Positions 17,076 through 55,075 are shown, counted from the first letter of the stretch. The stretch: DNA of 64,000 bases from Piromyces finnis finn (GCA_002104945.1 MCFH01000001.1:1178001-1242000), one strand, 5' to 3'. Notes: generated by a model not told the origin, from the sequence alone. Translations and numbers: made by a program.

Positions 17076-18198
17076 AATTAAATGAATACCAAAAAAAAAA
17101 AAAAAAAAAATTAAATGTTATATTTAAAACACAGTCAAAAATTTCAATCCTAAGATTTTTGTTATTACTGATGGATAAAATAAGTGATTAATATTGTTTT
17201 TTTAAAAAAAAAAAAAAAAGAAAATGTACTTTATATTTACTATGATAATATTCATAGATATCTTTTAAATACAAATTTATTTTTATCTTAATATGGAACA
17301 ATGGTAATTTTCATTTCTAGTATTGTTAATTAAACGAAAAGGATATTTCATTATTTTTAGAAATAACACAAAATATTTTATTATACTTTTTTTTTTTTTT
17401 TTTGATAGGTTAGACATTTAATAATTTATAATAATATATTAAACTAACCTTATAAAAAAAAAGTTTAACCATTGTTAAATGCTTATTAAAACAACAAGAT
17501 TTGTAAGAAAAGAAAGAAAGAAAACACACAAATCATAATATTCTATTGTTATAATTGTTATAATATAGATATATTGATAAATTAAAAAAAAAAATTATAA
17601 ATTTTCAAAGGTAAAATAAAAGCCTTTACAAAATATTAAATAAATATATTTAATATTTTTTATCTTTTTTTTTAATTTTTTTTATTTATTTTATTTATTA
17701 ATTATTTGCATGTCCTTAACAATAAATAATAAAATAAAGCATAAAAAAGGTAAAAGGATAATAGGATGGAAAGATTTATTTTTATCTATTTTGTTTTTAT
17801 ATAAAAAATCATATCTTTATCTTCTTTTATTATGATTACTATTTGCCTTTTTATTACTTTTTTGTTATTATTTCTTGATATCATTATAAATTTTTATACT
17901 AGTTTTCAATTATTAATGTAATTATTATTGTTAATTTTAATATTTTTTAATGGTAGTTTTTTTTATTATGATTTTTTATATGAAATTGAATATAATAATT
18001 ATGAATAATCTTGTAAAAGGTATTAAGATTTAGTTTTTTTTTTTGTTTGTTTGTTTATTTTGTTCTCTTTAACCAATTATATTTTAATTATACTAATGTG
18101 TGTAGCATTATGAATGATTTACTATAAAACTTTTTTTTTTCCTTTAGTATTATTAAAATAATTGAATTTAGAATGAAATCTATTTTCTGTTGGTGAGT

Positions 18199-19901
18199 TT
18201 ACTTGCTCTTAGCTCTTTCCTTTTGAGCTTCATTTAACTTAACTTGTAGTACTTCAATGATAGCTATTTTATTTCATATTAATTAGCAATTATCGTCGTT
18301 ATTATTATTACCATTGTTAATTGTTTGAATCCATAAATGTCAAAAAAAAATTATTACCATAGATCATTAATTTATAATTGTAATATTATTAAATATTACA
18401 GGATTTTAGGATAAAATCAAAATATAAAATATAGAAACAAATAAATAATAAATAATATATTGTTATTATAAATTGAAAATGAATTATTAAATATTGTTTA
18501 ATAAATTATTGGAATAATAAAAGTTACATTTATTTTGATCTTGTCTACTAATAATAGAATCTTGGAGCTTTTTTAAGTTTTCTTTTAAGAAAGTGTTCTT
18601 CTTTTCAAAGAACTTTTTAGTATCATCTAAGTTCTAATTTTATTACAATTGACATTATTTTTATTAAAAAGTGAAAATATATGAAAATATATTATATCAG
18701 CCAAAGTCAATAATAGAAACATTTATGTTATAATAGTATAACAATTTAATATTTTGTTGATATTTTGGTGATATATTTATTTAGTAATCTCTAGAAATAA
18801 TATTTATATTATTCGTATATTATTATCGTTATTATTGTTATTATTTTATACCTTTTCAACGTAGTAACCAGTACCAACATCAACAATTAATTTATCTTTG
18901 TTAACTAATTGACCTGGAACATATAAGTAAGAACAGCGAAAAAAAAAAAAAAAAAAAAAAAAGAGTTAAGGTAATTGATATTCATCTTTTTGTGAATAAA
19001 TATATGTTCAATTTTTCTATTTCTACACTTTTATGTTAAAAAAAAAAAAAAAAAAAAAGGATATAGAAACAGTAAGTGGAACAAGAATATTGGCACCTAT
19101 ATTTTATTATTAAAAATATAGAATTACTATATATGCGATTTTATTTTTTAAAATATATATACATTCACATGTAAAATATAATATATTTTGAAAATTTTAC
19201 CATCATCTAATTTCTTAACAGTATTAACACATTCAATGTTAGTATTAAATTTTGTTTGAGCTAATTTTAAAGCAGAGTATGATTCAGTTAAATGTTGGAT
19301 TTCCTGTGTTTAAGAATTAGTTTTTATATTTGAAAATTAAAAAAAATAAAATATATTAAAATATATTAGTATTATTCTTTTTCATATATATATGTAACTA
19401 TTTTTTTTTTATCTCTATATATAGATTATTTTTTTTCTTTAATAATTTTTAAAGTATAATATTTTATTTAATAATATAATATTTTTGATTTCTATTTGTA
19501 AATTTGATTAAATATACATATACTGGTATATAATATATATAATTATACTACATCAGAAATTTAATAATATTAAAAAAACTTTTGATGAAATTAAATTGGT
19601 TTGCAATATATTTTTGACATATTATCAAAAATCCAATATTTTTTTTTTTTAGTTTTAGGAATTATAAGCATATATTGTTGGCGTTTTGTTTTAGTAATGA
19701 ATTCTTATATATTTGCTTTGATTTTATTTTAAAATTGATTTATTATTATCAATACTATTATTGTAGAAAAAGGTACACAAAAATAGAGTTAAATCGAATA
19801 ACTTTTTATTATTATTATTATTGTTGCTTTTGGAATTACAAATTTCTTTGATACTCTTGTTATAAGAATAAATTGATTTTTTTTTTTTTTTTTTTTTTTT
19901 A

Positions 19902-19932
<31 letters not shown>

Positions 19933-20172
19933 TTATTTTATTTTATTTTATTTTATTTTATTTTATTTTATTTTATTTTATTTTATTTTATTTTAGATTC
20001 CTTTTCCTTTATGCTTCTATAGTAATGTTTAAATTAAAGTTTTTTAATTATATAAATGATAAAGAAAAAATACCTCTTCAATTTGTTGTCTAACAGCTTG
20101 AAGTTGTTCCATTGGAAGATCAGCAAGATCAATAACAGTAGTAGTTGCCTTATCCTTATCGCTTGATGACAT
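18199..20172 (-). CDS. PFDN5: Prefoldin subunit 5 (alpha-type), 6 exons (20172-20074, 19303-19201, 19096-19065, 18926-18852, 18633-18528, 18263-18199)
   Basis: Spliced product [59 protein letters not shown]...[45 protein letters not shown]...; motifs ILVPLT-S-LYVPG and [11 protein letters not shown]. Not present in the ORF track. Confidence 0.93.
18927..19064 (-). other. U12-type (minor spliceosome) AT-AC intron, 138 nt, phase 0
   Basis: 5' splice site ATATCCTTTT, branch-point-like TTACCTTAAC (18974-18965), 3' end TTCTTAC. Removing it joins VPLTVS to LYVPG in frame. Confidence 0.88.
19874..19995. repeat. Poly(T) followed by (TTTTTA/TTTTA)n inside PFDN5 intron 1
   Basis: Directly visible. 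Confidence 0.85.
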
Positions 20173-20194: not shown

Positions 20195-20228
<34 letters not shown>

Positions 20229-42136: not shown

Positions 42137-44643
42137 TTCTAATTTCCTATATTCCTATATCCTATATCCTTTATTATTAATAACATATAATATAAAAAAT
42201 ATTTTTTTTTTTTGTTTTTACTTACTATAAAAATGAATGAATGATAATATTATAAATTAAAAAGTAATAACAATAATAATAATAATAGCTATTTTTTTAA
42301 AACTAAATTAAATTCAATTAAAAAAACAAAAATAAAGAAATTTTAGTTTTTTTAAAGTTTATTAATAATTTTGTTTATATGGATAATCCTCCATTTTTTT
42401 TTTTTTTTGGAGGTGGAATATTTCCTTTATTAAGAATTACATTACATTATATTTATTATGTACAAAAAAGTTTATGTTTTAAAACTTTTACTTGGCTTTG
42501 GATTGTTGGGTTAGATTATCTTTTTATTTTGATATATTATACCTTCTTTAGCACTACTATATTACTGTGTACTGCTTTTATATCTCCACACAACAATATG
42601 ATTCTCCTAATAATAGGAAGGAGAATAGTGGCTTAAAAATTAAATATGTATGATTGATCCTAACCCTTTATTAAAATAATTTTCTTCTAACCCAATTATT
42701 ATGGTAGTATAGGTATTCTTTGCTACAATATTTGAATTATATTACCTTTTATCCTTTCTTACTTTTAAAATGAAAACTTAAATATATCATACACCCATAC
42801 ACATTCTTATTTAAAAAAGAAATAATAATAGCAATATTGATATTTACTTAACAATTTAACCAAATTGATTACTATCAATAAATAAATAGAAATATAAACT
42901 AAAACTATGATAAAAAGAATAGTTGCTTATAGTTGACTAATAGGGTTAATGAAAATATAGAAAGATTAATCAATGATATTTTTTATTTAAATAATTTTTT
43001 ATTCAAGCCTTTTAACTTTCGAGTTCAATTCCTTTAATTAAATTACCAATAAATAAAATTCAATATAAAATATAATTAATTTGTTGAGCTAAAATAGATG
43101 TTGAAAAAATATATAAATAAAAAACAATTATATTTATGTATAAGATAAGGCATAAAACTGACTTAAAAAATTATTAAATAATATTTATCCTTATTTAATT
43201 AAAGTGCATTGTAAATAAAGTTAAATAAAAGCCAATATATTATATATATAAAAACTAATTATAAATATAAATTTTTAAACTATTTTTTATTTTTACATTA
43301 CATCGTTTCTTGTAAGCCTTATTTTTTTTTCTTTTCTTTAATTTTAGTCAATAAGTTATTTTTCTATAATAACTTTTATTCTTTATTTTTACTATAAATG
43401 AAATAATAGATATTAGGTAATTTAAACTACTTAGTACTTTTCTTTTCTTTTTTTTTTTTTTTAATTTTATTCCTCTATTTAATTAAACAATGTAAAAATA
43501 AATTTTTTTTTTTTAACTTTTACAATAATAAATATTGAATTTTTAATTATTACTTTGCATTTTTATTCTGTTCTAAAATATTTCTATGAATTACAAAATA
43601 ATATTTTTATTAGTAATCTATTTTTTTTACTAAATAATAATGATATTGATGAAACCGATCGGCTTCTTCTTCTTTTTTTTTTTTTATAAAGTTTGATTAA
43701 CTAATTTTATATAACTTTTATTAAATATAAATTAAGCCAACAACATTGTTATTATTTATTGACTTGGTAGTAGCAGCGGCGGTCGGTGTATTAAAAAAGG
43801 AATATATATTTTTTTAATTTATTTTTTTATCATGATTTTTGTTTTTTTAATGATTTTTTTAATTCATGAGGATAAAATTTTCAATAAAATTATTGGTTTA
43901 ATATTAACTAATGTTAACAAAAAATTCTTTTACGAATTTTTATTTTACCTTCTGTCAATTTTTTTTTTTTTAGATCAACCAAATATGATGTAAGGATCGA
44001 TTTATTTAATAATAAAATAAGAATATTACTTTTAATGGTTACTATCATAGGTTTATAATAAAACAAAATTATATATTGTAAAATAAATAGAAATGTTTAT
44101 TTTTTTAAAACCAATTTTGATTTAATCAAAAAAATTAGCCATTAAAATTAGCCATTAATTTTTTTTTTATAGTAAAAAAAAAAAGAGAGCATTATTTTAT
44201 ATAACAACAATAACAAAAAAAAAAAAAAAAAGTATAAAAAGAACTAAAAGTTCATTTTTTTTATACTTTGTCATTATAAATACATTTTTTTCAAAAAAGT
44301 TATTTATTAATTAAATAAACAAACAATTATTTAAAAAGAATTTTTTTTAAAGCAAAAATAAACAAAATAAAAATTTCTTAATAGAAAACCTTTAGTATTA
44401 TTTAAAAAAAAAGAAAAAAAAAGATATATTACTTCAAAGCTTTATTCATAAAACATTACCATTAATATAATATAAAAAATAATAAAATAGTAATAAAAAT
44501 ATAAATAAATATTTTTAAAAAGAAGTTGTATATATAATATAGTATATATTTTAAAAGAATTATAAAAAACAATCCATATTTTCATTATTTTTTTTTTAAA
44601 AAAGTAATATATTTAAGAATATTATATATATATAAAATATAAA

Positions 44644-52816: not shown

Positions 52817-55075
52817 ATGATTTTAAAGTCATAAGATATATATAAAATAAAAGTGAAATCCTTTACCATTATTTATACTGCATATCTCCTTTCTTTCTGG
52901 TATACATTTTTTAATTGTATCCTTTTATAAAAATGAAATCACCATTCCTTTATTAATGAAATGAAACATTCATGTGTTAATAATACCATTTACTGACTAT
53001 TGAATATATACTCAAAAAAAAAAAGGGTTTTAACAATGTATTTTTAAATTTTCTTTTTTTTATATTTATTTATTATTCAAATTGTATTCAGTAATAAATT
53101 TAAATTAATCCTCATTAAAATTATTGAATTACAATTAATGAAAAAAAAAAAAAAAAAAAAAAAAACAAAAAAAAAGAAGGATCAGTAAGAAGTAAGAATG
53201 AAATTAATATAGAAAGAATTGCCATATTTATTTTATACATCCTTTAATAATTTAATTTAATACTAAATAATATAAAAGTCAATATATTATGCTTATTTAT
53301 TAATGTATTGAATCTTTCATTCAGCATTCATTTTTTATTTCTTTCCTTCAAAAATTTATATAAAACTAACATACCCAATTTAATTCCACCAACATATTAT
53401 TATAAGAATTCAACAACAGCACATAAATATTTATTTTTCTAATTTTCAAATTATTTCAAATTAATGATTTTTTTTTTTAAAAAACCATAATATTTTCCCT
53501 TTTTTTTTTTTTTTTTTATTTTAATTAAACAACTAATTTAAAATAATAATAAAAAAAAATATTTATTTTGTTATATAGTATTTATATTTATTATTATTTT
53601 TTTTTTAATTAATAAAATTTTGAAAAATTAAACCCCTAAACCTTAGTTGTATATTTTTTTTAATAGTCAGGAAATCAGAATGATAATAATAAAATTGTTA
53701 TTACACAATTAAAATAAATTATACAAAGAAAAAAAAATAACAAAAAACAAAAAAACAAAACAAGTCATTCAAAAAATTTTATAAAATTAAAAATTAACAA
53801 ATTCAAATCCAAAATTTAAATCATTCACAGAATCTAAATAAGTACACTCAAAAAACTATAAAAACAAAAACAAAAGAGTACAACACAAACACAAACAAAC
53901 AACAATAATAACAATGTATATTTTTGTAAAAAAAAAAAAAAAGGTTTAGCCTTTTTATTTATTATTAAAATCACATAGATAGCAAAAGAAAGGGTATTAA
54001 AAGGAATTGTAAACCTTTTTTTTTTTATTAGATTTTTTAATGCTCAATAAACTTTATTTATTTCTAAAACTTTTTTTTACAATAATTTTTAAAAGCCTAT
54101 TATTTTTATTTTATTTTTTTTTTTTATATTTGAAAAAAAAAAAAAATTATCTATAAAAGAAAAGTTATTAATAAATAAATAAACATTAAAAGTAAGATTT
54201 TTTAAGAAAATAATAATGGAATCTTTAATAATATATACATATTTTGTTTTAAATATTATTTGAATAGTTTTTATTTTTATTAATGTTTAAATATTTTCAT
54301 CCTAAAAATATTTATTGAGTAAATGAACAACTGGTTGGTGGTAATAACATTTTTATTATATTTTAAAGTAATATGGTGTAAAATTTTTAATGGTTTATAT
54401 TTATTTTTTAAATAAAAAAACAACACACAAATATAGTACAAATAGTACAAATATTTATAATTATTGTAAAATAGGGTAGGATAATATCCTTAATTTTACA
54501 TGAATTCCCGAAGCTAATATAGTTTGTAAAAACTTTTTAAATTTCAATGAAATTTTATATTATTTTTATTTAAATTAAAAGTATAGATAATATATTTTAG
54601 ATATTAGCTTATAATGTACATCACTACCTTTATATAATTTAAGGTTAATTCTTTTTTTATTATTAATAAATAACTTTATTTTATGATTTGGTTTCATACT
54701 AAATATGTCTTTTTTTTTTTTAATTTAATTTTACCTAAATTTAAATTTAAAATTTTTAATAGTATGGTGATTGGTTTAAAGGCTAATAGCGAAACCAATT
54801 TATAAGTAAAAAAGTAAAGATTATAAAAAAAAAGGAAAGAAAATAAAAAGTAATGACTCCAGTATTGTTAAAGTAAAAAAAGTTTAAATGAAATAATAAT
54901 AAAAATAAGCAAATGCATTTTCCATTTTCCATTTCTCTTTTTTATAAATTAAATTAGTTTAAACCATTTTTCTTTTCTTTTTTTTTTTTTTTTTATTTAA
55001 AAGTGTAATTCTCTTTTTTATTTTCCTAGTAAAAAAATTGTATACAATTAATTAAAAAAAAGAATATAAAATACT

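Follow-up and report, generated by a model that had tools for sequence, protein, structure and literature searches.

Positions 18,927 to 19,064 on the minus strand of the Piromyces finnis window (the whole stretch of 64,000 nucleotides that was analysed) represent, with a probability of about 93%, a genuine and ancient U12-type AT-AC intron that is removed by the minor spliceosome, and that forms the third of five introns in the gene encoding prefoldin subunit 5. The finding is real, and it is also already known, from a public gene model and from published accounts of the splicing machinery and of minor intron numbers. As a record of minor splicing in P. finnis it adds nothing; its possible importance lies in the distance between the branch site and the 3' splice site.

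The prefoldin subunit 5 (alpha-type) gene occupies 18199..20172 on the minus strand, and runs from ATG to stop codon in six exons with 159 codons. Exon 1 (20074..20172, 33 codons) and exon 2 (19201..19303, 103 nt) are separated by intron 1 (20073-19304, 770 nt), and exon 2 is separated by intron 2 (19200-19097, 104 nt) from exon 3 (19065..19096), which at 32 nt encodes only ten residues in addition to the glycine of a split codon. Intron 3 (18927..19064, 138 nt, phase 0, 17% G+C) follows, and leads into exon 4 (18852..18926, 25 codons), intron 4 (18851-18634), exon 5 (18528..18633, 106 nt), intron 5 (18527-18264) and exon 6, which includes the stop codon (18199..18263). The four introns other than intron 3 are all of the GT-AG type. 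Intron 1 contains an AAAAT/AAAAAT pentanucleotide microsatellite followed by a long A run (19905-20000 of the window, minus strand), and the start of the gene is flanked by T or A homopolymers of 20-30 nt (20195-20226).

The exons were translated and compared singly, and the full-length queries used were an intron-free open reading frame from a related fungus (L057, vide infra) and then a public protein (P0004). A public protein of 159 amino acids, annotated as 'Prefoldin alpha subunit [Piromyces finnis]' (P0003), agrees with the six exons at every residue and has no gaps, with exons 1 to 6 accounting for its residues 0-33, 33-67, 68-78, 78-103, 103-138 and 139-159, and with the two residues that fall outside these pieces corresponding to split codons. 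The Neocallimastix gene models are likewise correct, and the forecast in the initial annotation of a gene missed or broken by standard annotation is therefore wrong. The Pfam Prefoldin profile (PF02996) is matched by exon 2 (profile positions 4-36) and by exon 4 (positions 49-73, 30.2 bits against a cut-off of 23.2), and the 12 residues between them, consisting of an aspartate, the split-codon glycine and the ten residues of exon 3, occupy exactly the 12 intervening profile positions, with exon 3 itself assigned to positions 37-48. The L057 protein is 90% identical to the P. finnis protein and 56% identical to a chytrid prefoldin-5, which in turn is 47-52% identical to shark prefoldin-5. On the basis of the profile match and of orthology to named PFDN5/GIM5 proteins, the gene can be assigned to prefoldin subunit 5.

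The boundaries of intron 3 are exactly those initially annotated, with exon 3 ending at 19065 (...CCA CTT ACT GTT TCT) and exon 4 beginning at 18926 (TTA TAT GTT CCA GGT, encoding LYVPG), and the U12-type signals were found in place at this sole junction that preserves VPLTVS|LYVPG. The 5' splice site, ATATCCTTT (19056..19064), fits the consensus /RTATCCTTT from the first intron base, and merges into a stretch that totals 21 T (19058-19038). The branch-site motif ACCTTAAC (18965..18972) matches the consensus TCCTTAAC at seven of eight positions, with 18967 and 18966 as candidate branch adenosines, and is followed in order by TC, 24 T (18939..18962), CGCTGTTCTT and the terminal AC (18927..18928, within TTAC), which is the earliest AC or AG beyond the motif. 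With AT at 19064-19063, the intron has AT-AC termini. An intron with GT-AG termini is not available at this junction, again as initially annotated: a TAA lies in the frame of exon 4 at 18968-18966, no AG occurs between it and 18926, and the next AG (18912-18911), which is inside exon 4, generates GTC AAT TAG and hence a stop codon with either of the two phase-0 GT donors available, so that any intron ending in AG would fail to join exon 4 in frame.

By count, the splice motifs on their own are not significant in a window this AT-rich, since RTATCCTTT is found four times (3.7 expected) and CCTTAAC six times (4.2 expected). The other RTATCCTTT matches, at 17338-17346 (minus strand), 42164-42172 (plus strand) and 52917-52925 (plus strand), were rejected as minor introns, as they lie in non-coding AT-rich DNA with no exon context and their number is that expected by chance; the match at 42164 sits within a small CCTATAT repeat. 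The significance of the signals in intron 3 comes instead from their placement and from their recurrence in other named genomes. The donor motif begins at the very base where homology to the Pfam Prefoldin profile stops, and the AC ends where that homology resumes, a coincidence with the exact bases of the break that, together with its recurrence elsewhere, lies far beyond chance.

Related sequences that lack the intron support the junction. When metagenome contigs were scanned with a degenerate DNA pattern for a conserved stretch of ten residues, the matches included L057 (Ga0138317_1012718, 2523 nt), which has an intron-free ORF of 159 amino acids with 83-93% nucleotide identity to all six window exons and with VPLTVSLYVPG uninterrupted. 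This contig also carries two further intron-free ORFs, one for a LIM-domain protein and one of 228 amino acids, with no counterpart near the window gene, and probably derives from a related gut fungus, either as a chimera or as an assembly of overlapping transcripts. In Neocallimastix, a transcript-like contig of 944 nt (L066) reads ...GTTTCT|TTATATGTT... across the junction (TCT|TTATAT), and encodes a protein that matches the Neocallimastix genomic gene model at 100%; in the N. californiae (L064) and N. lanati (L065) genomes, this gene is again interrupted by the AT-AC intron. In the sister genus the junction is therefore verified at an RNA-like level, and in P. finnis itself the public protein supports it indirectly.

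Orthologous introns were read at the genomic loci of named prefoldin-5 homologues, with the distance measured between the best branch motif and the intron's 3' end. U12-type introns were found at a common phase-0 codon boundary, PLTxS | L/M-YVPG, in nine named genomes including that of a vertebrate. AT-AC introns are present in N. californiae (183 nt, with the motif 94 nt from the 3' end), N. lanati (180 nt, 91 nt), Entophlyctis helioformis (156 nt, 13 nt), Spizellomyces punctatus (76 nt, 12 nt), Gigaspora rosea (80 nt, 12 nt), Phycomyces nitens (102 nt, 18 nt) and Basidiobolus meristosporus (83 nt, 12 nt), in addition to P. finnis (138 nt, 39 nt). The introns of the last five of these other genera share with those of the gut fungi their position, their AT-AC subtype, ATATCCTT and a branch motif of the form CCTT[A/G]A[C/T], but they are 76-156 nt in length with the motif 12-18 nt from the 3' end, whereas the gut fungi have distances of 39 and 91-94 nt that are filled with simple repeats.

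In the elephant shark Callorhinchus milii (L072), the intron at this boundary (VPLTSS|MYVPG, compared with VPLTVS|LYVPG in P. finnis) has the form GTATCCTTG...TCCTTAAC...CAG; it preserves the phase, the core TATCCTT and the type of branch motif, but it is a GT-AG intron of 651 nt, in which 16 nt separate the motif from the 3' end. The vertebrate position was compared in shark DNA, and human PFDN5 enters the comparison through publications, in which it is a minor-intron gene (PMC8034651) with the donor CT|GTATCCTTT (PMC10853781 Table S7), which fits a serine codon ending in CT. The statement in the initial annotation that animal PFDN5 is a minor-intron gene was thus accurate. Two animal-like metagenome contigs (L038 and L062, closest to shark PFDN5), used for the junction only, likewise have an intron of the form GTATCCTT...AG at this boundary. 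Because a U12-type intron occupies the same codon boundary in fungi and in the shark, and published work classes human PFDN5 as a minor-intron gene, the intron predates the animal-fungal split; this age had also been proposed initially, and it agrees with the presence of U12-type introns at this position in the shark and in six other fungal lineages. Elsewhere, these comparisons indicate that the intron has been lost or converted to the U2 type: two metagenome eukaryotes (L049 and L061) have ordinary U2-type GT-AG introns at this position, and no intron was found at the boundary in Cladochytrium, in a tephritid fly or in most Dikarya-like contigs.

The genome search suggested in the initial annotation recovered one candidate for each of the four minor snRNAs, as judged against the Rfam gathering thresholds. 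The U12 snRNA (C189:428380-428555, 66.6 bits against a threshold of 53) and the U6atac snRNA (L002:1501-1649, plus strand, or G000:C112:211500-211648; 52.1 bits against 33) score above threshold, whereas the U11 candidate (L003:1501-1615, plus strand, or G000:C152:317514-317628; 38.2 bits against 39) and a divergent U4atac candidate (L004:1501-1639, plus strand, or G000:C90:253883-254011; 49.2 bits against 53) fall just below. The U12 snRNA retains the branch-site box GAGUAAGG. The weaker U4-like candidate can be assigned to U4atac because its 5' end, CGUCCUUAUCU, is a perfect complement of U6atac AGAUAAGGACG over 11 bp, and because a distinct major U4 is present at a separate locus (C178:389665-389799, 89.9 bits). 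The genome thus encodes U12 and U6atac and, as sub-threshold candidates, U11 and U4atac. Profile matches were also obtained for a U11-48K-type zinc finger (27.9 bits) and a SNRNP25-type ubiquitin-like domain (35 bits); a Pfam search of the genome for PDCD7/59K gave no match, but the controls likewise gave none, which makes this negative uninformative. The U11 candidate begins AAGAAAAGUUUU, without the GG that in vertebrate U11 pairs with the CC of ATATCC, and could instead form 8 bp with CUUUUUUU of intron 3. A SNORD14-like box C/D snoRNA (L003:2162-2325; 52 bits, below the threshold of 64) lies on the opposite strand about 550 nt downstream of this candidate.

The box in U6atac that pairs with the 5' splice site is AAGGA in vertebrates. 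The P. finnis gene, which is single-copy, has GCCGA at this position, and both a novel rewiring and a pseudogene were rejected as explanations, since the box corresponds to the published '[GU]CCGA CC variant', described from cnidarians, Trichoplax, Acanthamoeba, Physarum, moss and oomycetes (Dávila López et al. 2008, PMC2396436). That study does not list the variant for fungi with minor spliceosomes, and gives AAGGA for Rhizopus and Phycomyces.

Minor introns, together with many or all of the minor snRNAs, have been reported for P. finnis and N. californiae (Larue & Roy 2023, PMC10639083), and 129 minor introns have been counted in N. californiae (Olthof et al. 2024, PMC11347168). These catalogued introns share both organism group and intron class with intron 3, which, because the public gene model contains it, is almost certainly among the introns already counted. 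PFDN5 is not named in the main text of Olthof et al. 2024 (PMC11347168), and neither PFDN5 nor P. finnis is mentioned in one supplement to Larue & Roy 2023 (PMC10639083). The initial annotation had put the intron forward as a sign that this fungus has a minor spliceosome; intron and machinery are indeed present, but minor splicing in P. finnis was already in print.

Intron 3 presumably depends on this machinery. U11 would bind the 5' splice site ATATCCTTT, and the U12 box GAGUAAGG would pair with CCUUAACUC, which comprises the branch motif and the next two bases and which by inspection can form 8 bp with the box while one A is bulged; the branch adenosine would be the bulged 18967 or 18966. 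The U4atac/U6atac.U5 particle would join next, and the exons would be ligated at TCT|TTA. Like canonical AT-AC U12-type introns, intron 3 has a conserved 5' splice site and branch site, AT-AC termini and a predicted reliance on U11, U12, U4atac and U6atac. Unlike them, it does not combine a short branch-to-3' splice site distance, for which the optimum is 11-13 nt (Turunen et al. 2013, PMC3584512), with the absence of a polypyrimidine tract, a trait that is characteristic of the class and not strictly defining; its distance is 39 nt and its spacer is dominated by T24. Adenosine is absent from the 36 nt that separate the branch motif from the terminal AC, so an adenosine branch can be no nearer than 39 nt to the 3' splice site.

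Several properties of the long introns bear on the distant motif. Piromyces and Neocallimastix share an unaltered 12-nt block, ATTACCTTAACT, within introns of 11-17% G+C that are otherwise unalignable (a MAFFT alignment of the three introns places the branch block wrongly, and the conservation was taken straight from the sequences), and the terminal TCTTAC is common to both genera, while the intervening spacer changes fully, from T24 in Piromyces to (TTA)n in Neocallimastix. The spacers of all four long versions, which include that of L048 (Ga0157372_10039832, 3710 region) in addition to P. finnis and both Neocallimastix species, contain no AC or AG, so that in each case the intron ends at the earliest such dinucleotide beyond the motif. 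In the Neocallimastix spacers, none of the 25-26 adenosines precedes C or G, compared with 22% of those upstream of the motif; the naive P of about 0.002 for this absence of AC and AG is overstated, as repeat units are not independent. L048 is an AT-rich (28% G+C) contig from an early-diverging fungus with the same AT-AC intron, in which TCCTTAAC lies 46 nt short of the 3' end, and the long spacing may not be confined to Neocallimastigomycota. An RNA structure that brings the branch site near the 3' end was considered and rejected, as folding was no better than that of shuffled sequences (z = 0.27 for Piromyces and 1.43 for Neocallimastix).

The points that count against U12-type removal of intron 3 are the 39-nt spacing, the U2-like T24 run, the sub-threshold U11 and U4atac candidates and the GCCGA box of U6atac. 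The first two are what would be expected if the U12-like signals were relics in an intron now removed by the major spliceosome, with T24 as a polypyrimidine tract and the long distance as U2 geometry, and the GT-AG introns of L049 and L061 demonstrate that conversion to the U2 type does happen at this site. Such a conversion is nevertheless very improbable for P. finnis, given that ATATCCTTT is unable to pair with a U1-type 5' end and is unchanged in seven fungal genera, that the intron ends in AC and not AG, that ATTACCTTAACT has been preserved between Piromyces and Neocallimastix amid unalignable sequence, and that candidates for all four minor snRNAs have been kept. T runs are, moreover, ubiquitous in this genome, and 21 T also follow the 5' splice site. 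It is still harder to credit that the interval is never removed, whether because the gene is a pseudogene, because the intron is constitutively retained or because of an artefact of assembly or annotation: the reading frame stays open in all six exons, with 89-90% amino acid identity to relatives, retention would end translation 13 codons into the intron (TAG at 19025-19023), the same intron is present in the Neocallimastix genome while the intron-free transcript-like contig encodes an identical protein, and the genome scan detected just one prefoldin-5-type locus.

A third possibility accepts the minor spliceosome and concerns its mechanism, proposing that branching occurs at a non-adenosine nucleotide nearer the 3' end, in the T run or CGCTGTTCTT, so that the textbook short spacing is kept. 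The 11-13 nt constraint is well documented (PMC3584512) and the terminal TCTTAC is shared by Piromyces and Neocallimastix, but this arrangement is unlikely, as the P. finnis spacer lacks adenosine and offers the U12 box nothing with which to pair. By comparison, the CCTTAAC block has been conserved while the spacer has gone from T24 to (TTA)n, and measurement of the 3' site from that motif would predict the absence of AC and AG from four long spacers. Removal of intron 3 by the minor spliceosome thus remains the preferred reading, and the branch nucleotide probably lies in the distant motif.

On balance, it seems plausible that the minor spliceosome of anaerobic gut fungi is no longer bound by the constraint on branch-to-3' splice site distance, which would allow repeats such as T24 and (TTA)n to expand while the first AC or AG is chosen in a scanning-like manner. 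At the prefoldin-5 intron, the single intron considered here, growth of the repeat may be tolerated provided that no AC or AG arises. In the papers that catalogue Neocallimastigomycota minor introns (PMC10639083, PMC11347168), no discussion of such long spacing was found.

The prefoldin-5 intron is a clean example of a U12-type intron whose codon boundary has stayed the same from a time before the divergence of animals and fungi, with lineages that differ by a switch of subtype (AT-AC in fungi, GT-AG in vertebrates), by conversion to the U2 type or by loss. If branching does take place 39-94 nt upstream of the 3' splice site, gut fungi would provide a natural system for the study of how the minor spliceosome measures distance to that site, and classifiers that seek a branch site only near the 3' end would undercount the minor introns in gut-fungus genomes.
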